This document shows positions 1,664-45,266 of a DNA stretch of 64,000 nucleotides, piece by piece. The notes below the pieces were generated by a model. The model was not told the origin of the DNA. It did no database searches and saw nothing but the letters and a program-made list of their open reading frames with translations. Positions within the stretch are counted from its first letter, which is position 1. Each line of letters starts with the position of its first letter. Origin of the DNA: Pavona decussata (lineage: Eukaryota); NCBI GenBank assembly GCA_977016875.1, contig CDRNST010000104.1, positions 3,410,001 through 3,474,000 on the forward strand, given 5' to 3'. The position numbers and the translations under genes are program-made.

Positions 1664-3403
1664 TTAACTGTTATTTATTGAGTGGTTTCTTACCTCTAGA
1701 GCGCATCCGCAGGGGTAACCACATCCTCCGTATCCCAAGCCGCATCCCCCGTATCCTCCGCATCCTCCATATCCTCCACATCCCCAGCCTCCGAGAAAGG
1801 GATACCCGTAGCCATAGGCTGATAATCCGTATCCTCCCAATCCGCTGTATCCGAGTCCTCCACAGCCAGGTAATCCCAGGAACGCAGGCCCTCCACAGCC
1901 GCATCTCTTTTCAGCCTGGTTGGCGTTGTCTGAGGATGGTGGTTTACAGCCACAGTCACCTTTGTCTTTCTTTTTGTTCTTTGCTTCGGTATTTTCATCT
2001 GTTTCTATTTCGGCTTTGTTTTCTGCTGGTGTTTCTTCATCTGTTTCTCTTTTTGGTTTCGTCTCGGGTTGCCTGGCTTTACCTTTTTCAGAAATCTTGG
2101 ATTTGTAGAATCCGCAACCACACCCACAACCTGGACCCCATCCCCCGAAACCTCCATAACCCCAGCCATTACCAGGGAAAGCACCCCATCCCCATCCACC
2201 TTGGCCATATCCTCCCCATCCTAACCGACCACATCCTAATCCTGCACATCCTAAACCTCCACACCCTAATCCTCCGCATCCACCACACCCACCTAGTAAA
2301 CCACCACAGCCTCCAAGCAAGCCATATCCACAGCCTCCGAAGCCACCATAACCGCACCCTCCAAAACATTTCTTGTCGGCCTTCCCGGGCGCGTCGCGCT
2401 TGCTTTTCTCTCCTTTAGCAATTTTGGACTTATAAAAACATGAACCGAAAGGATAATGACCGAGGTAAGGGCTGAAGCTACCAAAGGCGGGAACACCGAA
2501 GCCAAGCCCTGGATGTCCGTAATTAGCCCAACCGGGATATCCGAATCCAGCGGGAACAGCAAACGGGGCATATCCACCATAACCGTAAAACCTCTTTTCT
2601 ACATTCCCCCTTCGGTTGGGATTTTTCTTATCGGTTTTTGGAACACCAGAGCGGAACAGGGCGCCACCATAATATCCTGGATAGGGATACAATCCATAGC
2701 CAGGAAAGGCGCCGAGACCATAGGCGTACGGAGCTGCATTATAACCACCCCAAGGGACAGCAAAACCACCAAAATACCCCCCGAGACCATACCCCCAGGG
2801 GTGCTCAACTCCAAATTTCTTAGATGAACCTCGACTTCTTGGACCTTTTGGTACATTAGACTTGTACCAATAGCCAGGCCAGCCTAGACCGGCTCCGTGA
2901 CCATATCCCGCTCCAAGTCCATGTGCAGGCCAAAAGCCAGGCGCGGCACTGGGATAAAAACCTCCAAACCCAAGTCCGTGGAATGCACCCCAACCAGGAT
3001 AACCCCAACCGCCAAACACACCTTGACCAGCATTGAACCATCTCTTAGAACCTTTTTGTTTGCTCTCTTTTTCTTTTTCTGTCGCTCCATCTGACAGTTC
3101 GTTTGATTTATCATCGTTGGTTTGTTCAACAGAGCTTGTATCGTTCTCGCTTTCTTCAACCTGTTGTTCTTTTTCGTCTTCTTTGGTCTCGGATTCGTTT
3201 TGGTTATCTTCTGCCGGCTTGTCTTCATCCTTCTCCTGTTCTTGATCGGAAGATTCAGGCGGTGAGTCTTCTTCGGGTTCGTCTCGTTTTAAGCGCTCTT
3301 TTCCTTCATTATTCTGGGATAGTGGCTTACTGTGTACCACGAGAAGACTTCCTAAGACTAGAAATACTAAAAAAAGGGAACAATTAAGTCGCAACGCAGC
3401 CAT
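1664..3403 (-). CDS. Secreted Gly/Tyr/Trp- and Gly/Cys-rich modular polyprotein precursor (cluster gene 1, ~579 aa)
   Basis: First in-frame ATG is at 3403 (the ORF track starts at a TTG). Signal peptide MAALRLNCSLFLVFLVLGSLLVVHS, then an acidic propeptide and five Gly-rich modules each opened by KR/KK; four end in [KR]S-x-[IV]. A possible splice donor (GAG|GTAAGA at 1693) makes the last 10 codons uncertain. Confidence 0.88.
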   Translation of the reverse strand: MAALRLNCSLFLVFLVLGSLLVVHSKPLSQNNEGKERLKRDEPEEDSPPESSDQEQEKDEDKPAEDNQNESETKEDEKEQQVEESENDTSSVEQTNDDKSNELSDGATEKEKESKQKGSKRWFNAGQGVFGGWGYPGWGAFHGLGFGGFYPSAAPGFWPAHGLGAGYGHGAGLGWPGYWYKSNVPKGPRSRGSSKKFGVEHPWGYGLGGYFGGFAVPWGGYNAAPYAYGLGAFPGYGLYPYPGYYGGALFRSGVPKTDKKNPNRRGNVEKRFYGYGGYAPFAVPAGFGYPGWANYGHPGLGFGVPAFGSFSPYLGHYPFGSCFYKSKIAKGEKSKRDAPGKADKKCFGGCGYGGFGGCGYGLLGGCGGLLGGCGGCGGLGCGGLGCAGLGCGRLGWGGYGQGGWGWGAFPGNGWGYGGFGGWGPGCGCGCGFYKSKISEKGKARQPETKPKRETDEETPAENKAEIETDENTEAKNKKKDKGDCGCKPPSSDNANQAEKRCGCGGPAFLGLPGCGGLGYSGLGGYGLSAYGYGYPFLGGWGCGGYGGCGGYGGCGLGYGGCGYPCGCALEVRNHSINNS

Positions 3404-4309
3404 AGTCTTCCGCGAGGAACGAAAGACCAAACTACGCCTTTAGTGAGACCACAATGTCTTTGCAAATGCAAAAGCCAACCTTACGTAAGTTATTAAATAT
3501 TCTTTTGTAATATAGAAAATAACGTGGCAAATAAAACATTAAAAAGACAAAACATTTTGCGTGTAGAATATTGTCTTCAGAATTCCAGGGCAAGCAATAA
3601 TTTAATTAGGTGAAAATTTATCAATATATTTTGTACGTTGCAAAGATGCTAGAATAAAGTTTGCAGTGGTGTGGATAGGGAGTATTTGATATTACTATTT
3701 CTTACTCCCAAGAAAAGTGATTTATCTTATTGCAAACCAACATTAATAAGTTATTTATGTCACCTGTTTAGAAGTCACGGGAGGGCAATTTTGCTTTGTT
3801 TGAGTAGTTATAGTTGTTTTGGCGAAGTTAAGTGACTACAGGTGTCCTACCATATTTGGCAAGACCATAAAGTGTTCAGCTACACGGAGCGACGGTTAAT
3901 TTGAAAGAAAAACGCGATTATCGCTGCCCACATTTAAAGAAAAATCATTACCTGGTTTGTTCAGTTTCTCCCCCAAACGAGGTGGCAAGTACCATGCTTT
4001 GAGCAAGCGTGATTGGTTGGGTTTAGGTTTACAATTATTTCAGTTTGTATTCCAGTTTTAACCCAAGGTACTTTTAAGACAAAAGTTAAAATAAAAGAAC
4101 AAACTATCGAGAATATTTTACAAACTGTGTTCTAAGTCAACATCATAACATTCATAAACAACTATATCTTAACGTGAAATTTATTTCTTGTGAACGCTTT
4201 ATAAAGAAGGCTTCAACATTTTTTTCTGGGCTTTAAACATTAAGAAATCCTGTTGTTATTTACTGGACTGTACCTCGAACGTGATTTAAAAATCTTCAAA
4301 GGTGGAAAC

Positions 4310-4875: not shown

Positions 4876-6053
4876 AATGTAGTTAGCAGGTGGGAATTTT
4901 TGTCAATTAATTGAAAGTTTTCTTGAATCAAAAAGTGTTTGTTTTGACGAGTAGCTTTATTTTTGTATGGTACACGATATACAATAAGAGTTTTAAGAAT
5001 ATTGCGACATTTGTTTATATTCCAACTTCACCCATATGCTGTTAAAAACATGTGCTAGTGTAAAGCATGTACGACAGAGAGAAGCTGATTCTCGAAAGGC
5101 ATGCGCCATGCGAAGCGTTACGACATGCAGGGAAAGGGGCAAAGGACAAGAATATTTCCATGAAAACAGGCGTCTTTCTACTCACTTTCATCTGGAAATT
5201 CTTGCCGCTGATGTAGCTAAAATGAACTACATCAAATCAATTGACGGGCGTTTAAAACCAAATCATAGCGAAGCTCACCCTTGCTGTTGTCTGAAGAAAA
5301 ACACTTTAACATGTCAGGTGTTTGCTTTTGGCGTTATTGCAAAATTAAGCTAAGTAAAGCGCCCATGAATATAAAAAAGTTTGCGAATTTGGCCAAAAAA
5401 AAAAACCACACACACGCACACAACAAAATTAAGAAAGCACAAATTTATTAAACTCATGTTCAAGGGTCCTAAGAGGAGAAGAACGGCTTGAAAAGATCGT
5501 CTAGATCATTTCATTTAATTTGTTTGGAATTATTTTAATTGCCTAATTACCTGCTCACTTCTCAGATATCATACAGTTGTAATATAGAACAAATTCATTC
5601 ACAGGAAAAATCCACTTACACCAGTCATATCTACTGGCTTAACGCTAGCTTAGCAAACAGATATCCGGAAATCATTCCATTTGCACCAGATATGATATGC
5701 TTATCCCTATATCTCGTGTTTGCACTGCATAACATACTCTGAGCTTAAGTAGTCAGTGAATATATGCAATGATTGAATATGTAAGCTGGCTGCATTAAAA
5801 GAAAAACAAAAGAAAGAAAAAAGATTTGAGAATGAAAGACTTGTGTGTTGCATTTAGTGTACCTAAGAAAAGAACAGTGGTTGAAGGGGTCTGATCTATA
5901 ACCTTTCGATACCAATGCACTACTTGACTCAATCGAGCGATGAAACGAACTCGAGAACTGATCCTCCTCCGTGAATTCGAATTTATGGCCATAAATGCTG
6001 GATAAGTAAAACTGAATACACGAACTGATCACATAGTACTAAGTTTCGCTTCA

Positions 6054-6374: not shown

Positions 6375-8330
6375 GTGGCCATGGAAATTTTCTAGTTTGG
6401 GGAAGTTACAGTGTATCATATACAAAGAGTTAAATCCTCCGCTCCCGAAAAAGAATTTTTTTGGAGCATCGTCGATACCAAATTTTGGCAGTTGTATGAG
6501 AAAATATTCAATGATCCTGACCCTATACTCGGATCCTCATTCGAAATGGTTGTAACGTCCAACAGTGACCAAGGTACATTTCGTCTCAGTTCAACTGACG
6601 TGGTAAAACGCACCACAGCCCTTAAAGAGAGTTGCTATTCTGAGACTGAGAATGTTTTTGTCCACCCGACAATAGAGTGAGGCAAAAATAGGCCGGCAAA
6701 TTAATCCTGTAGACCTAGTCAGACACACTGATAATTCACACATTCGTTTTGTCTGTGAAATAGCACTGCTTTATTGACCATTTGGTCAATTTACTATCAC
6801 AGGTGCTCAACAATTTGTCGTTTGTTAGTAAACACAATAAATGATTAAATATAAATAAACTCGGGAGGACAATTTCAGCCGTCAAGCCTAAATACTTTTC
6901 ATACATCTGCTGCAATACCTGATCACTAAAACCACTATCGTTTGGCACAGACGAATTTCAGATAATCTCTCAATTGTAAGATTTACGCTGAAAACACGAG
7001 TCTAAGGATTCTTTTAATCATTCATTAATGTGCTTGAGAAAATTGTTTTTCTTCGCAATTTGACTAACTTTTAATTATCAAAAGCGGATATGTTAGTTTC
7101 TTTCATTATAGAAAAGAGAGAAACACCTACGTTTAACAGCCCAGTGTTGTATTGTTGCAACAACAACGGATGATGCCATATTCTCGGAAATGAACTATCT
7201 TGACCGTTGCTTGTTAAACTTAGTGAAAAGAGACACCATATCACCTACCATCTTAGATGGTTCCTATTTAAAAACGGTAGAAACTGAAATTAGCGCGAAA
7301 ACGTTTTGCTACTTATAGAATGAAAGAAAAATAATAAGTTTCTTGTCTGTTTTCTTTCATGAATTAATTTTTCTTTGTTAGTTCGTGCGTTTCATATGAC
7401 AGCGTTGTTTTAAAGATGATTTTTATTACCTAAATAAGGGTTACATTTACCACGAACTCTTCCATAAAAAGATTCAACTCAGTTCTTTTAAATATCTCTT
7501 GCTTACACCTCTTAGTTAAGACCTTTATTCTTCTCTTTTTTCACCATACACCCTATTGTTCGTGGGCCTGACAGCATATAAAAGGTCCTGATTTTCAATA
7601 ACACTGATGCTGTTAACTCAAGTTTTGACGATCATCGAACCGTTACCTTGAATGGAAATAAATACAAGAATATTATTTTGACTTCATGCAGATGACCTCA
7701 AATTTGATTTATTTTGTCTTTTTCCTTTACTTTAAACTTTGTGAAGGTCAAAACAATGTACTTTGACCGATTAGCTATACAAACAAAAACAGAATACTTT
7801 ACTTTCAATTTTAATTAGATTTCCCTCCCGTGGTAAAGTTAGAAAGTAGATTTATTCTCGATTCTTAAAATGGCAGATATGCTTGTATTAAAAAGCTGGA
7901 ATACGCAGTAACATTTCCCCAACATTTTGCGCCTTTTTCAATTGTGCAAGAAAGTAGGTGTGTGTGTAAAAGTGTTTTTGCTGCAAAATCTTGACACTAT
8001 TAGTAAATTGTTCATTGAACTTGAACAAAGCACCCGCGTTTTCTACACCCCTAAACACAAACCTTGCATTCATGAAGCGAGTGTTTGGTTGCCGGAGCGA
8101 GAAAGACCTGCCCAAAGTGTACTTTTGATTGGAGACTAACAGGTGCTCTTTGTTCCGACTAGCTGGTTTCATGAGATAAGACGGGTTAATCCAAATTCCG
8201 TGCCCCTTATATCATCTCTTGTCTTTTCACGAACCGGCCCAAAAAATTGCCTGTGATGTAATAACAAAACAATGGTTGCAGAGATCGCACTCATTTCCCT
8301 GGCAAGTCTAATGTACTGAAAAGCGACATA

Positions 8331-11300
8331 ATGTTTGGCCGGTCGCCGCCAAATATTCTGGCGACTTCAGTAGTTTGTTTCTTACTCTTTCTTCAATTTC
8401 AGTGGTCTCCAACGCAAGCGAAGCCTTACTCAAAACAAGAGTTTTTAAGTACATATACAGCAGGTAACCTTGGAGGTGTCCGTGAAGAAGATTGGCCGGA
8501 ATTTGTAAACTATAATAATGGACAAAATATAGAAAGAAGTAAGAGAAGTCCAACTGAAGTGGAAGATGAAACACTGGACAGTTTGGTAGAGAAAACTTTA
8601 AGTGTAAGAGCTCGAAAGAGACAAGGTATTGAAACGCCGATACAACCTTTGAATTCAGACTCTCCTTTAGATCTTCCACACTTTAGCACTGAAGAACATG
8701 TTCGCTCAAAAGTTAACCAACCTGATAGTGAATCGGTTGGTGTAACGGTGGAAGAAGAAAAGAAAGCAGATGACGACATCTCTAGTACGAAGGATTCGAA
8801 AGGAGGTGATAATAACGTCAAGCCGGCAACGGGAAATGAATCAAACGAACTGCATCAAGACGAAAATGTTTCTTCGAGTAATGAAAATTTGAACAATAAC
8901 AAACAGAGAGGAACAGAAAACAAAGAGAATTTAGCAGCACAGGATAAATCTGATTCCAGCAAAGTCAGTCTAAACACTGATTCAAGTACTGACAACAAAA
9001 ACAGTAAAGATACTGGGGAAAGCAAAGCAGACTTGAGCAGGTCCGTTGATGAAAATGCACAAGTTCGTACGGTCCAAGGTACCAGTCAGATAAATAAAAT
9101 TGGCAATATTCCTAATGACAAGAGCGGTTCAAAATCTACACCACTGGACAACGATCAGTCTAGTTCAGTTACCGCTAGTACCAAAACAAATCAACAGGAA
9201 ATCCAAACTACAAATACAAATAATGCCAACAAACAGCAGGTAGACACCGACGTAAGTAAACCCACCGCAGCGAAACCCGAAACATCGGGTTTAGTTTCGA
9301 GTAATCAAAAACCGGCAGCTCCTTCAGAACAACGTCCACCAACTAACTCCCAGTTATCCGAAGAAAGCAAACCGATAAACACAGTACCTCAAATAAAAAA
9401 TGAACCAGAGGAACCGGTTCGAGATGCATTGGGGAATAGTGGATCAGAAATTGTGACAACTCATTCTCCCCGAGAGCCTGAACCTGAACTTGATTCATAC
9501 TCAGAAAGAAGCGCGGAAGCGAAACCTTCTAATGGACCTGAGGTTGGACATTTTCAAGTAGATGACAAATCTGCCGATCTTGAAATAAACGCTAACTCTG
9601 CCGGGGTAAAAGTTAAAGCTAAACCCGCCTCGTTACAGGTGGTTTCACGCCCTGGTTCTCACGCCGCATCGGGGGCACAAGAGCGATCTTTGTTCGGCCA
9701 TTACCACTACCCGCCTTATCATGTTCATCACCACTGGTATCCTGGCTTGCGTAGGTCATACGGGCATTTCCACCGACGCCATTTCTTCAATCCTTACCCG
9801 CCTTTTCCTGAAAGGCGTAGTTTCGAACGCTTCTACGACGAAGCACCTTTCTACCGTCGCCGCTTGCACTACTGGTACCCTCACAGACATCGACACCATT
9901 TCCCGGATTCCTATTTGTACGAAAGATCCCAACTAGAGGAGCCGGAAGAGCCTTTAAGATATCGTCGGCGAAGACGCCATAAACGGCGTTTTAGGCATAT
10001 GAACGGTCCGTATCGACGCCAGTTTTATAACAACATTCCGATAACGAATGGCATGGAATCAACTCCGATGGGCGTGCCACCGGAAGAAGGAACAATGCCT
10101 CAGTTACCAATTGGCCCACTTCAACCATTTGCACAGCGGCAGAATATTATAACGCCAATGCCACCTCCGATAAACGTTGCTGGAAATCCACCGCCTGGCT
10201 TACTTGGAGGAATGAACGCGGAGAACTTTCCAATGAACGAAATGAGCAATTTTAATGGGATAAATCAAGTAAATGGCGCATTTAATGGGATGGGTAATAT
10301 GGGCACAACGGGATTCAATTCTCCAGAACAAATTGGCGCCATTGAAGGTTTACCAGTTGGAATGAACGGTGGTTTGGAAGGAATGCAAGCAGCTGAACAG
10401 ACACCCGGTATAACCAGAGAACTACCAAACAGGAAAACTTTAGCTGAGGAACCAAGAAAGGCATTCAAGAAGACTGCGATCGTTTCTGGGAAGAAGGACA
10501 ACCACACAACAACTAAAGAACACTCACACGATCAAAATACAGCACTTAAGAACAAACACTCAGAAGAAGGTAAAAAGATGCAGACAACTGGCAGCACAAA
10601 GAAAGCAAAGATAAACCTAAAAAGTTGGGAAAAAACTCTCAAACGTTATCATCGACTCAATAAGTTTACGTCAAAATCACACGAAAAACATCAATTTCGT
10701 AGGAGTACCAAATCTTCTTCTTTAGACTCGGAAACAAAGAACACTGAAGGAAAAGTTCTACAAAAACACCGCATCTCGCATCTTCACTCACAGCGTGCAA
10801 AAGACACAAAAGGGAAGCGAAAGAACGAGATTATAATGCACCGTCCACCAATCATATATCACCCTCCGCCTGAAATCTATCACCGCCCTGACATTGTGGT
10901 TCACCGTGCACCGATTATGCTGCATCGGCCGCCTATAATTTACCATCAGCCTCCCGTTGTTGTTCACCGACCAGCAATCATCTACCATCAACCACCCATA
11001 GTCTTCCATCAACCTCCTCCAATGGTCCATCAGCCAATCCTGCGCTCTCACGACACATGGGTGACAAAGCCTGTGGTGTATCACACAGCATCCACAGTTT
11101 CTCACGATAAGACATACTTTGGAGTACCGTCTCACGTGTACACTGGCTCTTATGGTGAAGGATGCCACGGAGGACATTGTTCTTACAGAAAAGGAAGTGT
11201 GCCACATAGAAATAATTCCCAAGCTACCCTTCATAAGATAAAAACAAAACGCGACAGTTTGAGTGACTATATGGCTTATTTTACGTCCTTGTGGAAGGCT

Positions 11301-14300
11301 AATGGCATGACCAAAAGAAACGTTCATGATGACTACGATTTTATCACGTCAAGGGATGGTGCAAAACAAAAATTAATTTACACAAGTGTGAATTCTGGTG
11401 GGATAAGTAAAAGAGACAGCGCTACAGATTACAACAGATACATTCACAGCATATGGAACCATAAAGTCAAACGAGAAGCTGGTGATTTAAAAAACGGAAC
11501 AGAGAAGAAAAAGAAGAAAGACGTCGTTGTCAACCGCCCTCCTATAATTTATCATCCTCCACCTGAAATTTACCACAGGCCAGACATAGTGGTACATCGC
11601 CCTCCTCTTGTGATTCACAGGCCACCCATTATATACCATCAACCACCAGTAATAGTTCATCGACCAGCCGTGGTGTATCATCAACCACCGATTGTATTCC
11701 ACCAACCTCCCCCTGCAGTTAGCCAGCCTTTGCTGTATTCTCACGACTCTTTCACTGTTCATCCTACGTTCTTTGCTACACATCATGGTTCTGTTGTGCG
11801 AGACTTCGGGCACTATGTAGGGGTTCCAAATGTCATCACTAATTACGGAAACCCACTTTTTGGGAGAGGACCGCCCATTGGCAAGAGATCAAAGATAGAA
11901 ACGCCAAATTCAGTTAACGAAACTCTATCGAAAAGCTCAAATTCAACGGGGACTACGTCCAAGAAAGCCACAATTCAAGACAACAAGAAAAAAGAAAAGA
12001 ATGACACTAGTGAAAAAGCAAAGAAAAAGAACACTGTTTTGGTTCATAGGCCTCCAATAATTTATCACCCACCCCCTGAAATTTATCATCGGCCTGTGAT
12101 TGTGGTACATAGACCACCCATCATGATTCATCGGGCACCAATATATTATCATCAGCCGCCGGTGGTTGTTCATCGTCCTGCTATAGTGTATCACCAGCCG
12201 CCGCTGATATTTCATCAACCACCTCCAATGGTGCATCAGCCAATACTAAGGTCCCACGATACGTGGATATCTCACCATGTGGTGGTTCCTTACTCCTCAA
12301 GTGTTATGCATCACCACACCTACGTTGGCGTGCCTGACGCATTTACCGTTCATCACTTCGCAGGAGGACACAGCTTTTATAAGTCAGACATTTTAAGGCA
12401 TAACGACCGAGATAATGAACGTGCATCTGAAAGAAATGAAATAACTGGTAAGAAAACGTCGACGGAAAAACAGAAAGATTTACCCAAGAAGCACAAAATT
12501 ACTTCACATGATAAAACCAAACACACTTTGAATCTCAAAATTAAGAAGGCGGCTGCTCAAAAGGGCGGAAAGAAAAACGCAGTCATAGTGCGACGTCCTC
12601 CAGTTATTTACCACCCACCACCAGAAATCTACCACAGGCCAGAAATAGTAGTTCATCGCGCTCCTATTGTAATTCATCGAGCTCCAATAATTTACCATCA
12701 ACCTCCTGTGATTGTACATCGACCTGCTATTGTGTATCACCAGCCGGCGCTCATATTTCATCAGCCGCCACCTATTGTACACCAACCGTTTTACAGATCA
12801 CATGACACCTATGTCCATATGCCAGTTGCGAGACTATACTCATCTCGGATAAACCATTTAGGACACACGTACCACATTCCACACGCCTACTACCACGGTC
12901 ATGGTGGTGTTATTCACCATATGGCTTATGACAAATCTAAAGTACCTCAAAAGCAGCATATTAAAGACGAAAAAGGGGAGACAAGGACCACTGTTAAAAA
13001 GAGAAAGAAGTCAAAAACAGAGAAAACTAGCCATCATGCAGAAAGAAAGCATGCCACCTTAACAAAAAGCAAAGACAAAACAGAAACAGGAACAAAACTT
13101 CACAAGAATCATAAAATTCTTTACCATAAGGCAAAGGAGACTACAGAAAAAGCAAACAAAAAAAACTCTGTAGTTATACACCGACCACCAATCATTTACC
13201 ATCCACCCCCAGAGATTTATCATCGCCCAGACATCGTAGTGCACCGCGCTCCTATAGTTCTCTACCGTGCTCCGATTGTGTACCATCAGCCTCCAGTGGT
13301 GGTTCATCGTCCAGCCATTGTTTATCACCAGCCACCTATCGTTTTCCATCAGCCACCGCCTATGGTCCACCAGCCAGTTCTCCACTCACAAGATACTTGG
13401 GTGACCAAACCGGTAGCCATCCCATACGCATCTCATGTACATCACATAGCCACCTACAGGGGTGTTCCCCACGAAGAGATCTTTATGCATGGGATTGGCA
13501 CAGGAGCGTTCGGAAAATCCAGAGTTCCTGTTAGAGGGACCCGCAGAAACAAGATAGATAGTGTTGGCGATGAGAGAAAGAACCAAACAGACAACAAAGA
13601 AACAAAGGAAGCGAAAAATTTGAACGAGTCGAATGATAAAGGGAAGAATCGTACAACGAGAGCTGCATACAGTGAAAAGCAAGGTAAAGATACAATAGGA
13701 GCAGCAGAGAGAATAATACGAGCATTAACGGATTCACTTACAGATAAACGATTGGAATTTATGGTGAAGAAGAATCCCATTGGAGTTGGTGCAAGAATCC
13801 AAAGAAGCCTTCAAAATATATTCCCTGTGTATGGAGACTCTTTATCACTAACTGCCTCAAACCCTCATAATTCAATCAAGATTCCAGGACAATCTGTCGG
13901 TGCGGTAACGAGAATTCAACGATCCAACGGTGCCTTTTGGAGTCCGGTGGGTGCTGGTGCTAGGATACGGAGGGCCGTAGCAGAGCCATGGAACACTCTT
14001 GAAGGTGAGAATCCATATGAAATGAATAAACGTAGTAGTGAGGAAAGTGAAAACCCCTCTACACCTGACGAAAATGCAGACAAAAACACTAATAGCACCA
14101 AAAAGACAATACTTATAATTCGCAGGCCACCGATACTTTATCATCCACCAAGCCACATGATCCATCGACCATCCATAGTTGTTCACAGGCCGGACATTAT
14201 AGTCCACCGTCACCCCATCGTCTTTCACAGACCACCAATACTAGTTCATCGTCCCCCAATCATAATCCATCGCCAACCAGTACTTATTCACAGGCCGCCA

Positions 14301-17300
14301 GTAATAGTTCATCGACCGCCATTGGTGTTTCACCGGCCACCTATAATTATTCACCGTCGTCCTTATATTATTCATCATCATCCTATTCTGTTCCATCGAC
14401 CACCAATTATTATACACAGGGGACCGCAAATGATAGTGCATCACTCCCACCTAATTCATCATTATCCTATGCACATGATACACATGCACTGTCCTGGTTG
14501 TGGTTTTGGAAAATCCACCGTTGCACGATTGCAAGGTAAAAGAACTGATCAAGACGGTAAGAAAACATCAAATTCAGACAGACAACATAAAGACGCTACT
14601 GTCAAGGACTCCCAACGGAAAGATTCTAACCTGCCAAAACGCTCTGTTGCAGACAAGAAGTTAAAGAAAAGTTCCCGAGAAGAGGACCATAACAAAAAGA
14701 AGAAAGACGGACACAAAAAGAAGAAAGACGTAGTAGTCAATAGACCCCCGATTATTTACCATCCGCCACCAGAGGTATACCACAGACCAGACATTGTTGT
14801 TCATAGGGCTCCCATTCTTATTCACAGGCCACCTATTGTATACCATCAACCTCCTGTTGTAGTTCACAGACCAGCGGTTGTTTATCACCAACCACCCATT
14901 GTGTTCCACCAACCTGCACCGGCAGTGAATCAACCTCTGCTATTCTCACACGATAGTTTTGTTGTACATCCTATGGCTTTTGCATCCCACATGGGATCTG
15001 TTGTAAACGACGCTGGTCATTATGTTGGTTTACCGCACGGTGGAGTAACTAATTACCCAGGTTCTATATCCCATGGACCAACAGGACACATCATTCCTTA
15101 TTTAAATCCACCCAACTGGTCAAGAAGAGCTCAAGTTTCTAAACCGCTGGACGAAAAGCATACAAAAATCAACCATGGGAAGAATAACAAAGACCGGAAA
15201 CGTTCCTCTGGGACGACTGATGGCACTCACAGAAGAAGCGCAGGAAACAGTAGGAAACTTGTAATACAGGAAAGCAAGGAGACCAAAGGTGAGAGAAAGA
15301 ATAAAGTTATCGTTGCACGACCACCTCTGATTTATCACCCACCACCTGAAATTTATGATCGCCCAGACATTATTGTACACAGACCAGACATTGTGATCCA
15401 TCAACCCTCAGTTGTGTACCACCAGCCATCTGTAGTAGTCCACAGGGCACCGGTGGTTTATCATCAGCCTCCTGTTGTATTTCACCAACCAGCTCCAATG
15501 GTTAGCCAACCAGTGTACCACGCCCATGACACGTACATGGCACACCCCGTATATCATCCGCAAGAGAGCCACATTTCGCACTCTGCAACATATGTAGGAG
15601 CACCTCATTACTACCCAGGATACAACAGTTACGGATGGGGCTTACAAGGGAATATACCCACTGCACATATACAGCCAACTCCACAGATCCCTCAATATGG
15701 TTATACAACTGGTCCTACTCATCCTGGTTTCAGTGGATACACACCATATTCAGCCTCCCTTGGAAATGCCTTCGGAAGATCAAAGGTAGAAAATAAAAAG
15801 AAAGATAAATTTAAAGACAAAGAGACAAAATTGAAAAATGCTACCAAAAAGGGTCGTACGAGCAGGTCCGTGGAGTTAAGCAAACGTCACGTGCATCACC
15901 ATCATCATCACCACCATCGTCACCATCATCATGGCATTCATTATCGCGGAAGGAAACGCTTTTATCCTCTCCATCCAATGGCATCCTTTGCCCATCCAGG
16001 ACATCGCAAACATGTCGTCATTATACACCAACCTCCTTTGATATATCATCCACCGCCGCAAGTTTATACTCGGCCAGACATACTCATGCGTTTGCCTCCG
16101 CTTGTTTACCACAGGCCAGCGATAATGTTTCAACAGCCACCGACAGTAGTCCATCACCCCCAAATAGTTTATCACCAACCTCCCGTAGTCTTTCACAACC
16201 CTCCTTCAATAGTACACACACCAGTTATTCACACGCGCGAGATGTTGTCACCTCACCTTCAGCATGTAATGATTCCAACATCATCGTACATGCACTCTGT
16301 TGGAAACTTTTTTGAGCCTGGTGTCTCAGGTACGGCATACGGAAAGGCTCACATAGAGCGAACCGACGCAAGCAAAGACTCTTTGAAGAGCGAAGCTGAT
16401 ATGGAGACGAAAAGCAAGAACAAGAATGAAAAATCACACGAAAAGCGAGACGTTTCTAACGAACCTGAAAAAGAAATGAAAGATACGAAAATATCAAAGA
16501 AACAGAACGTTGATCTTGTAGTCCACCAGCCACCAGTGATGTATCATCCGCCACCGGATATCATTGACAAGCCAGCTGTTGTAATGCACCAACTTCCGAT
16601 AGTCGTGCACCGTCCGCCCATACTCATACACAGACCTCCTGTTGTGGTCCACAGCCCCCCAGTGATAATACACAGAGCTCCAATTGTACTTCATGACACA
16701 GCACCCGTGTATCATGTACCACATGGCAATTTCTTTCATCCAATGCGCTATGCTTTTGGAAAATCCACAGTAGAAGGCGAGAATCAGCAGCGAAACAAGG
16801 ACAAGCACAGCAAGGAGAAACATGATGAAAAGACCAGCCAGACGAAAGGCGCCAAACATTCAAATACTGAAAAAGCAAAAAGGAAAAACACCGTTCTTGT
16901 TAATAGGCCTGCGATGATATACCACCCTCCACCGGAAATCTATCATCGACCAAACATTATAGTACACCGCCCAGACATAGTCATACACCGACCATCAATT
17001 GTGTATCACCAGCCTTCCGTCCTTATTCACAAACCTCCCATAATCTATCGTCAGGCACCAGTTGTTTTCCACCAGCCTCCACCAATGGTGCATGAACCAA
17101 TTTTGCATGCACACGACTCGTACCTTGCATACCCTGTTGCACTGCCATACACATCACACATTCATCATGCAGCAACATACGTTGGGGCTCCACACTTTTT
17201 TGATCAGCCACATTTTGGTGGATTTGGTGGATATGTGGGGCATGCTTTTGGAAAATCGGAAGTTGAGGAGACCAAGAAAACACACCGCAGTGATGAAAAG

Positions 17301-20300
17301 GAAAGTAAGAACAAAAAACATACCAACACTGAGGTTAGAAAAAATTTAAGGTCAACGCGTGATGTGGACTCTGAAAAAACAACTAAAGAAAATAAAAAGT
17401 CAACCTCCACGGTCAGTTCTAAAGGGCACAAAAAGAACAAAGTTGTTATAAACAGACCGCCATTAATTTACCACCCGCCACCAGAGATATATGACAGACC
17501 AGATGTAATTGTTCATCGGCCGGATATCGTCATTCATCGTCCTTCTATTGTTTATCACCAATCATCAGTAGTTGTCCACAGACCGCCAATCGTATATCAA
17601 GCACCTTCTGTGGTCTTCCATCAACCGCCACCATTGGTGAATCAGCCCATAATGCACGCTCATGAAACTTACGTTGCTCATCCAGTACCAGTGCCCTACA
17701 CATCCCATATCCAGCACACATCAACCTATGTTGGTAGCCCACACCACTATCCTGGTGGATGGCACTATGGTTGGAGCCAACCTCAGCCGTATGGATTTAC
17801 CTGGAGTCAGCATCAGCCATTTGGTTTGGCATTCGGAAAGTCAAATGTGCCCGCAGCAAAGCTAAAGTCTTCAGGGAACCATAAGCCCGCAAATAAACAT
17901 AAAGTAAAACGAGCGGAGAAAGATCAAGCCAAAAAAAATGACAAAAACATAAGCCCAAAGTCTGAAGGGACCGGTAAGAAGAAAAACCAAGTACTTATAC
18001 AACGACCACCTTTGATATACCACCCACCGCCAGACGTGTACCACAAACCTGATATAATTGTGCACAGACCTGACATTGTTATCCACCGGCCTTCCGTGGT
18101 TTATCACCAGCCATCTGTTGTGGTTCACAGACCACCGGTGGTTTATCATCAGCCGCCAGTTGTTTTTCATCAGCCATCTCCAATGGTTAGTCAGCCAGTT
18201 CTACATGCACATGACACTTATGTCGCCCATCCATATTTTACGCCCTACTCATCCGATGTATATCACTGTGGAAGCTACGTTGGTGCTCCGCACTGTTATA
18301 ATGGCGGATGGGGGGAACACGGATATGGCTTTGCCCATGCCTTTGGAAAATCAAAAATACAAGTGGCTAACAAGAAACAAAAGCACCAAAAATACAAAAG
18401 CAAAGATCTAAAGGGCCACCGCAGAACCCTTGAGAAGGAAATCAAGGAGGCGGTGGATGAGATTAAATTAAAGAAGGAGGCCAAAAAGGGGATAAGGGCG
18501 AAAAAGAAGAACCTCGTCATAATGCGTCGGCCTCCTCTAGTCTATCACCCACCACCGGAGATTTATCACAAACCGGATGTCATTGTGCATAGACCCGATA
18601 TTGTCATCCACAGGCCTTCTGTAGTTTTCCACCAGCCTTCGGTTGTAGTTCATAGACCACCAGTAATTTATCAACAACCTCCAGTCATATTCCATCAGCC
18701 AGCACCCATGGTTCACCAGCCTATCCTTCATTCACATGACACGTATTTCGCGCACCCCCACTTTGTCCCGTTTGCGTCGCACTTACATCACGCAGGCAGC
18801 TACGTGGGTGCCCCACATTTTTATCCAGGAGGATGGGGCTTAGGAGGGCACACTGATGACTTTCACCACGCGTTTGGAAAATCAAAAGTCGAAAAATCGT
18901 CAAAACAGCATGTGAAGAGTGACCACGAGAATAAGGACGGAAATGATGACGATGGGGAGAAACGTTCTCCACCAGAGGCAACAGACTCTTCTGAGGAAAA
19001 TAAGCATAAAGGCAAAATTAAGGAAGCCACAAAAGGACACAAGAAAAACTTAGTAATCATGCGTCGGCCACCACTTATTTACCACCCGCCTCCAGAAATA
19101 TATCACAAACCAGATATAATTCTACACAGACCGGATATCGTTATTCACAGACCGTCAGTTGTTTTCCATCAACCATCCGTGGTGGTTCATAGACCACCAG
19201 TAATTTACCATCAGCCGCCAGTTGTTTTTCATCAGCCATCATCAATGGTACACCAGCCTATCTTCCATTCACACGAGACGTATGTTGCTCACCCTCATTT
19301 TGTGCCATATTTGTCCCACTTAACGCACGCTGGGTCTTATATAGGGGCACCACACTTTTTCCCAGGACACTGGGGACCAACACATGGGTTCGGACATTTA
19401 GCGGCACATGCATTTGGAAAATCCAAAGTAGAAAAAGCTGCAAAAAAAGTAAATACAAAAGCTGTGACTCCAAGAGCAAAGTCAGAGGAAGCTGTGCATT
19501 TTAAAACCAAACGAGAGGCAAAACATGAAAACTTGCATCGTGACTTGTCTGGTGTGAATCAAAAGGCAAAGCTAAAACAACAGTATTGGAAAGCCACGGG
19601 AGAAAAAGCAGAAAGAAAGGCTGTCCATTTACATCCCGAAAAGGAGACTAAGAAGGGTCACCATAAAGCACACAGAAAAAACTTAGTCCTGATACAACGT
19701 CCAGCTTTGATTTATCATCCGCCACCAGAAATCTATGACAGACCAGCTATCATTGTTCACCGACCCGATGTCGTCATTCATCAACCTTCCGTGGTTTACC
19801 ACCAATCTTCGGTGGTTGTCCATCGTCCACCAATTATATATCGCCCACCACCAGTAGTATTCCATCAACCAGCACCAATGGTACATCAGCCTATGTACAC
19901 TTCCCACGACATATATCATAGTCATCCGCACTTTGTCCCATATGCCTCTCATATCAAGCACACACAAACCTACGTAGGAGCACCGCATTACTACCCTGGA
20001 GGATGGAGGTATGGCTACGGCTTTTCTGAAGCCTCTATACCTCAACACGCTGGATTAAATGGGTGGAATGCATTTAACAGTCCATGGTATCAACCATCAC
20101 TTTACAGAGCGAATTACCTTACACCAACTGGTGTAGCATCGCCCAGCGGTATCCGCAGAAGATACCAGTCAGCATTTGCCAAGTCTGATGTTCAAAAGCA
20201 CGATGCGAAAACCGAAGACTTGAAGGACAATCACAAGAAAAAAGACGAAGGTAGCCAAAAATCGCATCATGTTCAAGAAAAAACAGGAAAACGAAATCGC

Positions 20301-23300
20301 CGCTCAACCGAGTCAACTAAGAGACGCCAAGGAAAGGGGCGCAAAACGGACGAAGGAGGCAAGAAGAACGTAGTAATGATAAGACGGCCTCCACTTGTGT
20401 ACCACCCACCTCCAGAGATCTATCACAAGCCAGACGTAATTGTGCATAGACCTGATGTAGTTATTCACCAGCCTTCTGTGGTATACCATCAACCTTCAGT
20501 TGTGGTTCACCGTCCACCAGTTATTTACAACCAGCCTCCGGTGGTATTTCATCAGCCAGCTCCCATGGTAAACCAACCAATTTTTCATGCGCATGAAAAC
20601 TACATGGCCCACCCTTACTTTGTTCCTTACGCAAGTCAGATCCATCATACTGGTACTTACGTTGGAGCTCCTGAATTCTTTCATGAAGTAAGGGCCTTTG
20701 GAAAGTCAGACGTTTCAAACAACAAATCAAAGTCTAAGAAGCCACACGAAAAGTCTGAAAAGAAAAACAAAATGGTGAAAATAGATAAACGAAAGAGCGC
20801 CAAGGGAATGGTTTTCCATCCACAAGAAGAAAGAGAAGAAAAACCATCAAGAAAGAATGACATAGTTGTTAGCCGTCCTCCTATTATCTACCACCCACCA
20901 CCAGAAATTTACCATCGGCCGGATATTGTAGTTCACAGAGCTCCTATAGTGCTTCACCGCCCACCGATAATCTATCACCAGCCACCAGTAGTTGTGCATA
21001 GACCTGCTGTCGTGTACCATCAACCCCCAGTAGTCTTCCATCAACCACCTCCCACAGTTCATCAACCCATTCTTCATTCTCACGATTCATTTGTTGTCCG
21101 CCCAGCCGCCAAATTCTTTCCACAAGGCTCTACGTTAACACATACCATGAATTATGTGGGAATTCCTAACCATGTAATACATGGTGATGAACTAGCGTTT
21201 CACCACTTTCATCGATCACAAATAGAACATTCTGGTAGAGATACATCGTATAAGAAGCCATCAACTGTCCAAGTGGCGAAATCGACCATCTCTAAAATAC
21301 CTACAACTAACAAAGAGAATACTCAAACAACCATAACAGACCAAACGCAAAAGAAGACTTTGCGATCTATCATACGTCACCACAAATTAACTAAAAGACA
21401 GCTCATTGGTTCACATTCACTTTTTGGATCCTTTTCTCCTATAAACAACATTCAAGATTCTGAAAAATCGGTTGAGCAGAACGAAAAGCTGTCAACTATA
21501 CCCGGAGATACATCAATTCGTGAAAATAGCATTGCCAAGAGGCAACTTATTGCACCAGAATCTATCGAGAGTGTCTTCCCTAACTTTATGCGCAACTCTT
21601 TACCCTCAGTTTACAATACACTGGAGATGGCAGCTTTGCAAAACCAAGCTTTAGCAGCCTCTGAGGACTCACCAGTATCAGACAAGGTTGACCAGGTACA
21701 TTTGCCTGGTTTTACACCCACTTTACCAACACTTCATGGTATAGGAAGGTCTGGAATTGAACGGTACCCTTTTCTTTTAAAACATTACCTGCCAGGAGCT
21801 CCAAAAGATGACTCGCCGGACGTACGCGTTCACATAGAAACAGCAAAGTCCTCTATACCGATTAAAGCACGTGGAAAGCGGCAGATTATCCCTATATTTC
21901 AGCAGCAAGAACCACCACAAGCATATCCAGCACTCTATCAGTCGCCAGGTCTTGAGAATTTGGAAGGGGCTATCCGCGAAGCTACACCTTCCTCCGTTTA
22001 CCGCCTCTTCAGTCCATACAATGCGATGAGTCATCCAGGTGCAGATCCATATCACTATCTACGAATCCCTTCCGCGTCATTGCATCATCCTCGCGTCAAT
22101 ATCAACGTGCAGTCAGCAAGATCTACGATACCTCACATTGGCCATGCTATTCAAAAGCGATCAAACAACAAAAAGTCAAAAAGACAGTTTTTGGCGGTCA
22201 TGCCACCTCTCTCTTCCCGTTTACCCGTTGGCTTAGGGGGTGGGATAATGCCCCTCCCTTTCTCACCTTACTCGGCCCTGTCCCGTTTCCCATATCCACT
22301 TTTACCCCGTCTAGACTATCCTCAAGAACCGGAAACCGAAGAAACCGCATTCACAGAAGCTTTACCAGTTCTTCCTCGTCCATCATCAATTCCTCATACT
22401 CCATACAGCGGATTTTCAGAAGACCAAGACAATGACTCACCGTCATTCAATCCAGTGGCTTCATACTTAGCTGCACTTTATAATGGCTACTTTGGGTACC
22501 CATTTTATCGTCCCCATAAAAAACCTAAAGTCCACGTGGAGGTACACGCATCAAAATCACAGATACCCAAAGTCACAGAGAACAGGAAATACGGTCATTC
22601 TCGTATTTCTAAACGGCAACTGTATAATTTCTTACCACGTTCACCAGTAATCGCAAATCACTATACCTTGCCTGCAGCTTTAAATTACGGAATACAAGGG
22701 TTTCACCAGAATTCTCCGCATGTAAGCATTAACGTAGAAACAGCAAAGCGTCAAGGAATTCCTTCATTGTTAAAGGAAAAGAGGTCCCCAGTGGCAAAGA
22801 AGTTAAAGCAACACGAACAAAGAAGAACTGGAGATAAAAGAGACCAGCTTTTACAAAACGGAGAAAATGGTCAGGAATCTTTTCCATACCAAGAAAACTC
22901 GAATTCTGTTGCAACACAGGATAATCAGTTTGTTATTTCAAGAGAAAGCAGTCAACCACAAGAGGAGATCGCTACAAACAACAACGAGATCGCTCAACCA
23001 CTAGCGCAACAGCAGCTTCTGCAAGAAGCGGCTGGGCAACAGCAAGAGCAGCAAGAAGCAGAACAGCAACAAGAAGAGCAGCAACAAAGACAGCTTGAAC
23101 AACAAGAGCAGCAACAGACCATAGTACAACAACCAGAACCTTTTCCCAACCAACTGACAATGGAACCGTTCCAAGCTCAGCAGCTAGCTTTTCGGGCACC
23201 ACTGACTCCAATGCAAGTACCAATGCAGCCACCAGGGCAACCAGCTTTTAATGCACCTTTTGTGGCACCATTTATGGCTCCTGTCCAAGGTGTGTTCCCT

Positions 23301-26300
23301 GGCGTATTACCTGGAGTTTCAGGCAATCATGTTGCCGAACAGGCTATTGCACAACCAGGATCGAATGCTGGAGAAGGTCAACCGAAGCATACCTCAATTA
23401 ATGTTAACGTGGCCGCCAAATCTATCGTTCCAAAGAAAACTTCAAAGAAAAATAAAAAATCCCACAATCCGAAATTTACAGCTTCACAACGAAGAAATAT
23501 TCCTAAAAAGTCTGCGATGGAAAAAGGGTTTGAAAAGCGCGAGAGGATTTCTCTTTTAACGCGCTTTCCTGCAATGCAAGTATTGCCCCAAACGTTTAAG
23601 CAGGACGGCGTATTGATGCCTGCTTTCAATACTTTACCGGTTAATCACAGAATCAAGGGTAATGGGATGCTCTTGGAAGAATTACAAAGGCAGAGAAAGC
23701 ACCAAATTCCAAAAACAGCTAAACATAATGACAGAGGCAGTCAAACAGACAAGGAAAACAGTGAACAAGTCAAACCAAAGGAAAACGCAAAAAAACGCCA
23801 GTTCTACGGCATCTCGCAATCAATGCTAACATCTCAACCATATGTATTAGCACCACAACCTAAAATCCATCTAAGACCCAAAGTTTCAGTCAACGTGGAA
23901 GTCAGTAAGAGAAAGTCTGCGTTTCCAAACGGAAAATTTCATTTAGAACTTAAAGATGTAGAAAGTGGGTTTAATCGCAACGAAATGAAACCAGAACGGC
24001 GAGTGTCTGGAATAGAACAGAAGATTCAAATGCCAAATGTGGATACGCCTCGAGTGCGTCAGATTCCCTCGAAAGTGCAGCGACACAGAGTGACAGTTCA
24101 TGGAGAAAGAGCAACAAAGAAGGGAGTGAGACAGCAAGTACTCAAACGAGGACAAAACAGCGACAAAAAACGGCAAATATACGGCTTTTCGGAGTTACCA
24201 AATCAGGGTTTAATGCAGCCATTGTCGTTAGGCAGCCAAAATGAACCGCTTGGATATTTACCTAGAGCACTACACAGTCCACGTATTTCTATCAATGTTG
24301 AGGCGTCAAAGCGATCACCGGACCCTTCACATGATGTCCAAAAACGCCAACTGCTTGGTCTACAACCCGATGCCAAGGAAACCCTAGATCAAGCTCAAGA
24401 ACCCGTTCCATCTGGGCAACCAACATATCAGTCGGATGACCTAGTTGCGGAAGATGCTGCACAGTTACCTATCCAAGTACAAGATCAATCCCGGGAAAAT
24501 GAAGTATCGCCTATGGCTATTGAATCAAATCCCACAATGACACAACAACAGCAAGTCCAAGACCTATCACCAGATAGCTTAGAACCTCAGGATGCTTTAA
24601 CTGATATCTTTAATAAGCGTCCACGAGTTTCTGTTCATGTGGAGGCTTCGAAAAGAGGGAAAAACGAAAGGAAACTACGAAGTGCTTTAAATAGAAAACA
24701 ACGCAGCGTTAAAGAAAAAACGGGCGGCAAAAGACAATTTCAACAAATGGAACAAGGGGCGAGAGATTATGGGCCTTATATGCAAGGACAAAGACCTGTC
24801 ATGGATACTCAGCAGTTAGTGGTCGAACAACAGCAACAGCAAATTTCTCAGCCACTGGATTTTATTTCCCCTGTTGGTCAACAACAGAATGTTGAACAAT
24901 TTCAGCCAGTAATGTTTCCAGTTGCGCAGCCAGGGGAGGCAAAAGCGAGACCAAAAGTGAGCATAAATGTTGAAACCGCAAAGTCTTCCATATATGGACA
25001 CAGTGACCATTCAAAGGAATATGGATCGGAAAAGAAAACGAAGCGACAACTGTTTGGCACCGTACCCCTTCTTAGTTCCCTTGGACAAACAACAGCACCT
25101 GGTGATTCACGAAAGATAATTAACCCAAGGTCATCTGTACCCCTCTTAACGGAGAAACCTGCAGACAAAAAAGATCTGCGATTGCGGAGAAGACAGCTTT
25201 ATAATTATCTAGGAGGCCAACAGGAACAGATTCTTCCTACCCAGGCGATACAAGATACCACTGAGTTTGAACAACAACAGCAAGAACAACAACAGGACAT
25301 ACCAATACAGGCATCTCAACAGGATGTTCCTGTAAACCTGCAGCAAGCCTCTGTATTGGAATCAAGTAATCAGTATCAAGGCCAAATAGAGGAACCAGAA
25401 AACAGTCAGACAGCTCCTGCCATACCCACTCAACCTGAATCATCATTTAACCCTCTTGGTACAATTCACCGTCCTCGTGTGAGTATAAACGTTCAAACAG
25501 CTAAATCAAAAGTGCCAAGCATGATGAAAGCCAAAATACCAAAATCAGAAAACAAAGGATCTAGTTCCCAGGACCACGAAAAGAAGAAATTCAAAAGACA
25601 GTTTGATATCCTTGGTGGCGGTGGTGAAATTGAAAGACGGCGGCGCCCAAAGTTTTTGACAGCACCACCATTAAAGAAAGGGCGGGGTGAAAACCTATTC
25701 GGTTTGGGCACTAATGTGAACAAGCCCGTTGAAGTCTTTGCAAATCCAATCGCGAACCTTGTTGCTGGACGAAAAAGACCAAAGTTTGGGGGAATTCAGA
25801 TCGATAGTCCCACAGATGTTGGAGCTTTACGGCTTAAAGGAGGTGCCAACCCTTTAGGAGGTGCCCTCGCTTCTGATGTGGGTGCACCACCTATAATTCA
25901 AGACAGTGCCGCAGCGGGAATTGCCCCATTTGTTCAGGAACCTGCAGCGACTGGCAGTAATCCTTTTTTACCTCCGAGTGGTATCGCAGGGCCTCAAATT
26001 GATGCTCTTGAAAAAGGAGACACTGGTACCTTACCAATAGCTGGACCTCCTTTGAACAGACCAGCAATTATTCCGTTACCTGCTCTCAATCAGGCTCTCT
26101 TCCAAAACTTGCCTTTGGCAACTGCTACAGGACCACCTACGGAACGTCCTCTACTACTTTCTCCACGAGTGCTTCCGCTAGCCCCAATCCTACCAATGGC
26201 AGTACCACCTCCACCACCACTGGCAGTACCACCAGAAGCAGTACCACAACCGCTACAGACTCTAGATGAGGCAGGACCAGAGCTGCAACATGATCCTCAG

Positions 26301-27128: not shown

Positions 27129-27259
27129 NNNNNNNNNNNNNNNNNNNNNNNNNNNNNNNNNNNNNNNNNNNNNNNNNNNNNNNNNNNNNNNNNNNNNNNN
27201 NNNNNNNNNNNNNNNNNNNNNNNNNNNNNNNNNNNNNNNNNNNNNNNNNNNNNNNNNNN
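27129..27259. other. Assembly gap (N run)
   Basis: Run of N. Confidence 1.
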
Positions 27260-38800: not shown

Positions 38801-39159
38801 CACCATGGAAGAAACAATGGCGTGAAAAATTTATTGAGTTCCAATTTGTTCGCTGATTAGCGCAAGCACCTTTCCTCCAGTAGCAAAACCGCATTCATAG
38901 ATAAACCTGCAGTTCGAAAAATGACGACAGGTGGTTTTATTGTGTGATGTGACGCCGCCATAAACTACTATTCTTCCATGAAACTAATTGCCACGTGCGA
39001 TGAGATGATAAAAGATTAAATCATGGCAAAAATTCCCTTGGAGTGAAGTAATCTCGGTTTTACCACTAAGGCCTTCGACAAGTCCCTTGTGTTTTGACTT
39101 ATTGCTCTTAAACGGAATCTAGCAGACCGTGTTTGTTTACAACTTTAATTTTCCCGGAT

Positions 39160-45040: not shown

Positions 45041-45266
45041 NNNNNNNNNNNNNNNNNNNNNNNNNNNNNNNNNNNNNNNNNNNNNNNNNNNNNNNNNNNN
45101 NNNNNNNNNNNNNNNNNNNNNNNNNNNNNNNNNNNNNNNNNNNNNNNNNNNNNNNNNNNNNNNNNNNNNNNNNNNNNNNNNNNNNNNNNNNNNNNNNNNN
45201 NNNNNNNNNNNNNNNNNNNNNNNNNNNNNNNNNNNNNNNNNNNNNNNNNNNNNNNNNNNNNNNNNN
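45041..45266. other. Assembly gap (N run)
   Basis: Run of N. Confidence 1.

Follow-up and report, generated by a model that had tools for sequence, protein, structure and literature searches.

What is a histidine- and proline-rich heptad repeat for when one giant protein carries it 18 times? The question is raised by a 64,000-nucleotide stretch of the Pavona decussata genome (assembly GCA_977016875.1, contig CDRNST010000104.1, positions 3,410,001 to 3,474,000 of the forward strand). This whole stretch is called the window, and all coordinates refer to it. A single uninterrupted open reading frame (ORF) of the window runs from 8331 to 26507 on the plus strand and encodes 6058 amino acids plus a stop codon. 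The product is a mosaic with a calculated mass of 685 kDa and a calculated isoelectric point of 9.8. One of its zones is the His-Pro array at 10815-21227 (+), aa 829-4299, where 18 modules are separated by Lys-rich linkers of 41-208 aa.

The module, ~107 residues long, appears to be a real, undescribed protein domain, and its sequence leads us to propose a new cnidarian His-Pro heptad family. No described family fits it. The array belongs with His-rich modular structural proteins in kind and is built on an undescribed domain. The preferred explanation, to which we assign a probability of about 0.5, is that folded His-Pro domains serve as rigid rods in a giant secreted cnidarian matrix or scaffold protein.

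The module array and its conservation

The modules are anchored by the tetrapeptide YHPP, which occurs exactly 18 times (aa 843-4187) and whose positions define the bounds of the array. The initial annotation, made from the sequence alone, had counted 18 modules over the same interval, and the count holds. Sixteen modules are canonical, one is expanded (module 6), and one is short (module 10); length and heptad order are kept in most copies, as had been described. Sixteen modules align over ~107 aa with a mean column identity of 70%. Each is composed of ten heptads, in which H-[R/Q]-P-[P/A/S/D] precedes a hydrophobic triplet of beta-branched or aromatic residues, and ends in a conserved His/aromatic tail with the consensus SHD-[T/S]-aromatic ... 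S ... Y-V-G-x-P. The tail, at first described as variable, often contains YVG(A/V)P, as had been noted: Y-x-G-x-P is found in 14 of the 18 modules and YVG[A/V]P in 8.

The seven-residue period is far from a chance feature of composition. There are 107 strict x-P-x-Phi-Phi-Phi-H heptads, whereas 1000 shuffles gave 0.96 on average and never more than 5. Histidines spaced 7, 14, and 21 residues apart form 151, 142, and 127 pairs where 38 are expected, and all other lags give 17-43. The earlier description of a ~70-aa core with His near every seventh residue is therefore correct. The array is 10.5% His, 11.8% Pro, 4.8% Gly, and 0.2% Cys, and just 7 Cys occur in the entire 6058-aa protein. Lysine makes up 16.6% of the linkers, where all 13 N-glycosylation sequons of the array are found. 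The copies are divergent as DNA, with Tandem Repeats Finder picking up only short fragments, so the repeats are old and have been maintained at the protein level.

Full-length orthologues of 4500-6300 aa were found by whole-protein search in Oculina patagonica, Stylophora pistillata, Nematostella vectensis, and Hydra vulgaris. They span Scleractinia, Actiniaria, and Hydrozoa, and all are labelled "uncharacterized" or "hypothetical". The Nematostella gene is LOC116618347, the Hydra gene LOC100210570, and the Stylophora entry SpisGene9031/PFX26305. The Pavona protein is also 98% identical to an ENA entry. Cores are 84-100% identical among corals and Nematostella, compared with 10-45% for linkers. 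Module 2 is 98, 92, and 82% identical to module 2 of Stylophora, Nematostella, and Hydra, respectively, and modules within the giant protein share only 37-85% with one another. Module 7 is 98% identical to its Stylophora counterpart, 85% to the sixth module (m6) of Nematostella, and 79% to m6 of Hydra. Across 117 coral, anemone, and Hydra modules each heptad has its own signature, e.g., H53 (100%), R12 and P13 (99%), F66 (97%), and E22 (93%), and Tyr occupies fixed heptads.

A maximum-likelihood tree groups the modules by position across species. The module-2 clade, which includes Hydra, has support of 95/84. Grouping with Nematostella counterparts is supported at 99/89 for module 1, 99/92 for module 4, and 82/75 for module 3, and module 7 joins Nematostella m6 and Hydra m6 at 90/73. 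This grouping by position means that at least part of the array predates the split between Anthozoa and Medusozoa. The type-B modules (8 and 11-17) expanded later, within Anthozoa, and module 6 is lineage-specific. The module is thus a constrained domain and not generic low complexity. Repeat proteins that are giant and confined to one taxon tend to be written off as low-complexity sequence; the conservation of the unit repeated here across the deepest cnidarian split is close to that of a housekeeping domain.

The taxonomic range was checked with a hidden Markov model (HMM) profile of 110 positions, searched against 1.84 billion representative proteins. Family members were defined as full-length matches covering profile positions 1-105 or more. 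About 60 representative proteins match in this way, with E-values down to 0, and they include the Nematostella and Hydra orthologues. All 16 canonical modules also match over the full length. The search returned 403 matches at E < 1e-3, of which those below about rank 60 are junk heptapeptide translations. Homologues with organism names are all cnidarian. Some further proteins bear 1-6 modules behind a different N-terminus, and a profile search of the window's own 602-Mb genome confined the module to the giant gene.

All 18 modules are on the plus strand. Module 1 (10821-11141, aa 831-937) is of type A and is 92% identical to module 1 of Stylophora and 78% to that of Nematostella. Module 2 (11514-11840, aa 1062-1170) is the most conserved and is followed by modules 3 (12027-12353, aa 1233-1341), 4 (12573-12899, aa 1415-1523), and 5 (13161-13478, aa 1611-1716). 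The atypical module 6 (14103-14516, aa 1925-2062) has ~17 in-register, nearly uniform heptads of the HRPPIIIH type and a His-rich end with CPGCGFGKS; it is 98% identical in Stylophora and absent from the Oculina and Nematostella orthologues. Module 7 (14721-15041, aa 2131-2237) is 'm8' in the HMM numbering. Module 8 (15297-15620, aa 2323-2430) is of type B, module 9 (16008-16316, aa 2560-2662) is the most divergent, and module 10 (16506-16760, aa 2726-2810) is a core without a tail. Type B continues in modules 11 (16884-17207, aa 2852-2959), 12 (17433-17759, aa 3035-3143), 13 (17982-18308, aa 3218-3326), 14 (18507-18830, aa 3393-3500), 15 (19044-19370, aa 3572-3680), 16 (19677-20000, aa 3783-3890), and 17 (20364-20687, aa 4012-4119). 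The last, module 18 (20853-21179, aa 4175-4283), is of type A and is 90% and 80% identical to the last modules of Stylophora and Nematostella.

Several linkers have features of their own. The linker between modules 1 and 2 holds three KR-[D/N]-S-x-x-D-Y...S-x-W units at 11190-11480 (+), and the linker between modules 5 and 6 holds units of the G-A-R-I-Q-R-S type at 13700-14000 (+). Just upstream of module 9, at 15894-15932 (+), aa 2522-2534 form a run of 13 His/Arg residues (8 His, Arg, 4 His).

Predicted structure of the module

The structure of the monomer was predicted with AlphaFold2 (AF2) for module 2 (model m87af22f64735) and, separately, for the 55%-identical type-B module 13 (model m9d13fc8f9630), using an alignment of 117 modules. 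The two paralogous modules were modelled alike. Both have the same pattern of eight strands of 3-4 residues each, recurring every seven residues, so that each strand falls in a heptad of its own. The strands occupy model residues 7-10, 15-17, 22-24, 29-31, 43-45, 50-52, 57-59, and 64-67. The predicted local distance difference test (pLDDT) is 87-96 over residues 11-70 in both modules. The models contain no helix, and one His per heptad adjoins each predicted strand.

An exhaustive shape aligner returned the stem hairpins of the anthrax PA, lysenin, and iota-toxin pores as its sole matches (Z 2.8-3.0, residues 3-70, root-mean-square deviation 6-8 Å, identity 3-6%). Taken together, the symmetric strand list and these shape matches favour one long antiparallel hairpin over a solenoid. 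A reasonable model of the core is a two-stranded antiparallel hairpin, where residue i would pair with approximately 74 minus i and the apex would lie at the fifth strand position. Like the module, the stems of anthrax PA, lysenin, and iota Ib are long two-stranded antiparallel hairpins of ~60-70 residues. The likeness is one of shape alone: the module is without amphipathic alternation, and nothing suggests pore formation.

These results bear on two proposals of the initial annotation, a regular fold or fibre (beta-solenoid or PPII/beta hybrid) and a ladder of His residues. A regular, constrained unit is favoured by position-specific conservation, by 82-98% identity across cnidarian classes, by the predicted repeating beta unit, and by a core pLDDT above 90 in two paralogues, but the beta-solenoid is not, since the shape matches are hairpins only. 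The ladder is retained to the extent that one His per heptad lies beside a strand; His-His pairs would not occur in the predicted register. The His residues of the two arms would instead be staggered, facing the conserved Asp28, Asp35, and Glu22 or Pro positions. This suggests His-carboxylate pairs rather than intramolecular His-His chelation.

No described repeat family or fold with another function was found. Foldseek gave no match in the PDB (best E 3.1), a shape search of the ESM Atlas gave none (TM 0.33 or lower), and a PDB sequence profile search gave 0 matches. A protein-atlas feature search reached a best score of 0.82, with bacterial hypotheticals only, and was uninformative. Pfam had no match above its cut-offs for the module or the array. 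The nearest was Chorion_3 (PF05387, cut-off 22 bits), at 20.1 and 20.3 bits for half-arrays, 13.3 for the whole array, and 9.4 for a single module, followed by Cuticle_3 (PF11018, cut-off 27.1 bits) at 16.9. The domain is without annotation, Pfam model, structure, or mention in the literature searched.

Two familiar classes of repeat were also ruled out, as had been stated at the outset. Collagen and minicollagen are excluded by the lack of any (G..)x4 run and of a CxxxCxxxCxxxCxxxCC Cys-rich domain. Coiled coils are excluded by the 2-3 Pro per heptad and the helix-free AF2 models.

The scaffold reading and its rivals

Secretion of the protein is indicated by a predicted signal peptide at 8331-8420 (+). 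Read by eye, aa 1-30 have a basic n-region and a hydrophobic core and end in TQA before KPY; an equivalent N-terminus is present in the orthologue fragment P0024. Starting from this signal, the conservation, and the predicted strands, which are observed, we infer the steps that follow. Each core would fold into a long, proline-kinked, two-stranded antiparallel beta-hairpin, with heptads 0-3 paired to heptads 8-5 and with heptad 4 at the apex. Within a heptad the hydrophobic triplet would make a mini-strand, and the H-R/Q-P-P segments would form regular kinks, so that the ribbon edges carry a His and either an Arg or a Gln from every heptad. The protein would then be a string of ~18 rigid, cationic, His-edged rods on flexible Lys-rich linkers. 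Its role would be that of a multivalent structural or cross-linking scaffold in a cnidarian-specific extracellular or secretory-organelle matrix.

Histidine gives such a scaffold a potential switch. The calculated charge of the ~70-aa core is about +2 at pH 8, and His protonation would raise it to about +11 at pH 5. With this calculated shift, assembly or polyanion binding is expected to be pH-dependent, as the initial annotation had proposed for assembly. Cross-linking by Tyr or by metals, for which Zn and Cu had been proposed, is possible. A role only in calcified skeletons is disfavoured because the gene is present in Hydra, Nematostella, and stony corals. More speculatively, the protein could belong to the cnidocyst, an attractive candidate in that this acidic, polyanion-filled organelle occurs throughout the phylum.

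If the predicted Pro-kinked, His-edged hairpin is real, it adds a new domain type to the His-based biological materials. By working principle, the nearest of these are the suckerins and the metal- or pH-responsive His-rich proteins of jaws, beaks, and byssus. Suckerins are the proteins of squid sucker-ring teeth; they are small, cephalopod-only, secreted, and modular, and are without Lys-rich linkers. In suckerins, Pro-bounded, short, beta-forming, His-containing hydrophobic segments alternate with Gly/Tyr/aromatic-rich ones, to which the module tails (e.g., ...YVGAPH-YPGGWG-GYGF) may be compared. Suckerins differ in having no strict 7-residue period and no position-specific ten-heptad domain, and no sequence relation emerged in the profile or PDB searches. 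Nvjp-1 of the Nereis jaw, the His-rich flanks of mussel preCols, and the squid beak HBPs share the high His content, secretion, probable insolubility, and pH-titratable charge. These are Gly/Ala-His low-complexity sequences and evolve fast, in contrast to an array with 10.5% His, 11.8% Pro, and 4.8% Gly that is conserved up to 82% between cnidarian classes.

Other comparisons are more distant. Spinalin, a protein of 24 kDa, is likewise a cnidarian, secreted, His-rich structural protein. It is small and Gly-rich, unlike the Pro/Val/Ile-rich module with 4.8% Gly, and no relation surfaced in the searches. The title of the paper on this Hydra nematocyst spine protein terms it glycine- and histidine-rich. 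Plant proline-rich cell-wall proteins (PPVYK/PPVEK) resemble the module in being secreted, in their short Pro-Pro-hydrophobic-Tyr-basic repeats, and in regularly spaced Tyr that could be cross-linked by oxidation; they differ in being uniform pentamers, plant-specific, and without sequence relation. Histidine is noted to be unusually abundant in the protein skeleton of the hexacoral Savalia (PMC12491595). The horny skeleton of the gold coral Savalia savaglia is comparable by bulk composition only, and module orthologues occur in the skeleton-less Hydra and Nematostella as well as in stony coral. The Savalia link is only a lead for the wider family.

A more far-reaching version of the scaffold reading can be stated, which we hold as tentative and rather doubtful. 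The hairpin would be a fold peculiar to cnidarians and older than the split between Anthozoa and Medusozoa. In a material found only in this phylum it would bear load and be switched by pH or metals, either as a structural or polyanion-binding component of cnidocysts or as the long-sought His-rich matrix protein type of cnidarian horny skeletons and cuticles. The giant gene and its four secreted neighbours, syntenic with Nematostella, would form a five-gene cluster, or 'material locus'.

Evidence on the gene itself comes from sequencing runs. Contigs of two probably-RNA runs map only within the ORF, and one begins at 8306, 25 nt 5' of the ATG. No splice joints were seen in the probable RNA contigs across 7600-13599. 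A single apparent splice "joint" proved to be a repeat-induced misalignment in a 95-99% relative. Downstream of the stop codon, ATTAAA signals are found at 26690 and 26806.

Several points weigh against the rod-and-scaffold account. The hairpin is itself a prediction. The AF2 predicted template modelling score is 0.35-0.36, and tail pLDDT is 47-74. Single-sequence ESMFold2 gave pLDDT <50 in at least one run, and since the prediction without an alignment is unconfident, the AF2 confidence depends on the alignment of paralogous repeats. A three-copy homo-oligomer prediction of the core returned a score of 0.00 and no verdict, which is evidence neither way. Covariation speaks for the hairpin, but weakly, with 9 of the 40 top mutual-information pairs near its register compared with 4.0 expected. 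The covariation p-values, 0.086 at the predicted sum of 66 and 0.015 at a sum of 68, are uncorrected for 43 registers and confounded by subfamily structure. The RNA label of the runs confined to the ORF is a guess, and two runs labelled as metatranscriptomes carry colinear contigs that reach far upstream of it; these runs may contain DNA and were not counted as proof of transcription. Full-text literature searches by locus identifiers, accessions, and core peptides returned no mention of the gene, and the orthologue identifiers are absent from the supplements of the Nematostella matrisome paper.

The strongest rival is a polyprotein precursor, a possible reading that we nonetheless consider unlikely. 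Cutting at the many basic sites in the secretory pathway would release ~18 His-Pro proteins, each 110-180 aa long, together with about a dozen fragments from the C-terminal zone that start with Gln (pyroglutamate). A freed module would then work as a small protein in its own right, e.g., as a building block or as a packaged component, cationic or antimicrobial in nature. Potential sites are plentiful: a conserved K-K lies two residues ahead of the first strand (69% and 90% Lys in the 117 modules), most modules close with a conserved [A/F]-G-K-S-x-[V/I], and [KR]-S-x-[VI] occurs 29 times compared with 8 in shuffles. The Lys-rich linkers fit as well, and the same grammar is repeated in four neighbouring secreted genes. 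The residue after KR divides the protein. Gln follows in 12 of 22 cases in the C-terminal zone, where Gln makes up 9.8% overall, but it is never among the ranked residues after KR in the His-Pro zone, where S, K, and D rank highest. Modules have kept their order and number for hundreds of millions of years. A chain that functions as a unit accounts for this more readily, although stoichiometric co-production would have the same effect. The shared grammar keeps the polyprotein alive as a reading and is compatible with a structural role.

A less probable rival is that the array is an intrinsically disordered, compositionally biased spacer, mucin-like or coacervate-forming. On this view the regularity of the heptads would be left over from tandem duplication, and aligned input repeats would have misled AF2 into a hairpin. 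The empty Pfam, PDB, and fold searches are in line with this, as are the unconfident ESMFold2 prediction, protein-atlas feature scores of 0.82 or lower, and the many junk heptapeptide translations that the module profile also draws. A spacer of this kind is hard to reconcile with modules that remain orthologous by position and 82-98% identical between Anthozoa and Hydrozoa, next to linkers with only 10-45% identity. The heptads are individually distinct and not interchangeable, and their diverged DNA copies speak for long maintenance as protein. Distant kinship with the arthropod-type chorion and cuticle families, hinted at by the sub-threshold scores and by PF05387 in the precomputed Pfam column of several orthologues, is very improbable, and membership was rejected because all scores are below the curated cut-offs, the matches span only the Pro/His/Val-rich part of the profile, and the named true homologues are all cnidarian.

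If the predicted hairpin is real, the 110-residue unit is also a concrete, expressible object for studies of pH- or metal-switched assembly. Published cell atlases exist for Nematostella, Hydra, and Stylophora. Nematostella and Hydra are open to gene knock-down and knock-out, so the biological role is directly testable.

Other zones of the protein and the neighbouring genes

The N-terminal part of the giant protein holds a second conserved element at 9531-9644 (+), aa 401-438, which reads FQVDDK...E-I-N-A-N...GVKVKAKPASLQVV. Identity profiles along the protein give 82-96% for this element among corals and Nematostella. Its residues alternate between polar and hydrophobic, and it is conserved on a par with the modules. 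The element is without a Pfam match and may be a family-defining N-terminal domain. The N-terminal part also holds a stretch rich in Arg, His, Tyr, and Pro.

The C-terminal zone (21228-26504 (+), aa 4300-6058) is 1759 residues long and is made up of a different unit type. About a dozen units end in P-x-V-S-[IV]-N-V-E-[AT]-[AS]-K-[SR]-x-[IV]-P, followed by a basic stretch and KR-Q. The unit end, in which P-[R/K]-V-S-[I/V]-N-V-E-[A/T]-[A/S]-K recurs, comprises a beta-strand-like tag and [A/S]-K-S-x-[I/V]-P. Gln-rich stretches of this zone lie at aa 4890-4950 and 5500-5510.

Four neighbouring secreted low-complexity genes share the grammar of the giant gene, i.e., an [A/G]-[K/R]-S-x-[V/I]-P terminator, basic spacers, and KR-Q restarts. 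The genes at 1664-3430 (-) and 48617-49774 (+) carry the terminator and KR-Q grammar. Those at 39133-41130 (+) and 45816-47327 (+) carry the grammar together with the FQVDDK...LQVV element. Orthologues of the gene at 39133 are present in Actinostola and Nematostella. The Nematostella orthologue, LOC5512467, is on the same 13.7-Mb contig as the orthologue of the giant gene, so the cluster is old. The gene at 39133 also has a 9-residue His-Pro repeat of its own at 39424-40283 (+), of the G-P-H-V-P-A-V-H-I type. Each of its blocks closes with one or two heptads that resemble the last heptads of the module (VYHQ-PIVFHQP), and two module-like heptads stand at the end of the gene.

The remainder of the window includes runs of N at 27129-27259 (131 bases) and 45041-45266 (226 bases). 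A single-exon ORF at 53138-54598 (+) encodes 486 aa and is unrelated to the cluster. By eye, it resembles ribonuclease-inhibitor-type leucine-rich repeats followed by an EF-hand-like C-terminal end.

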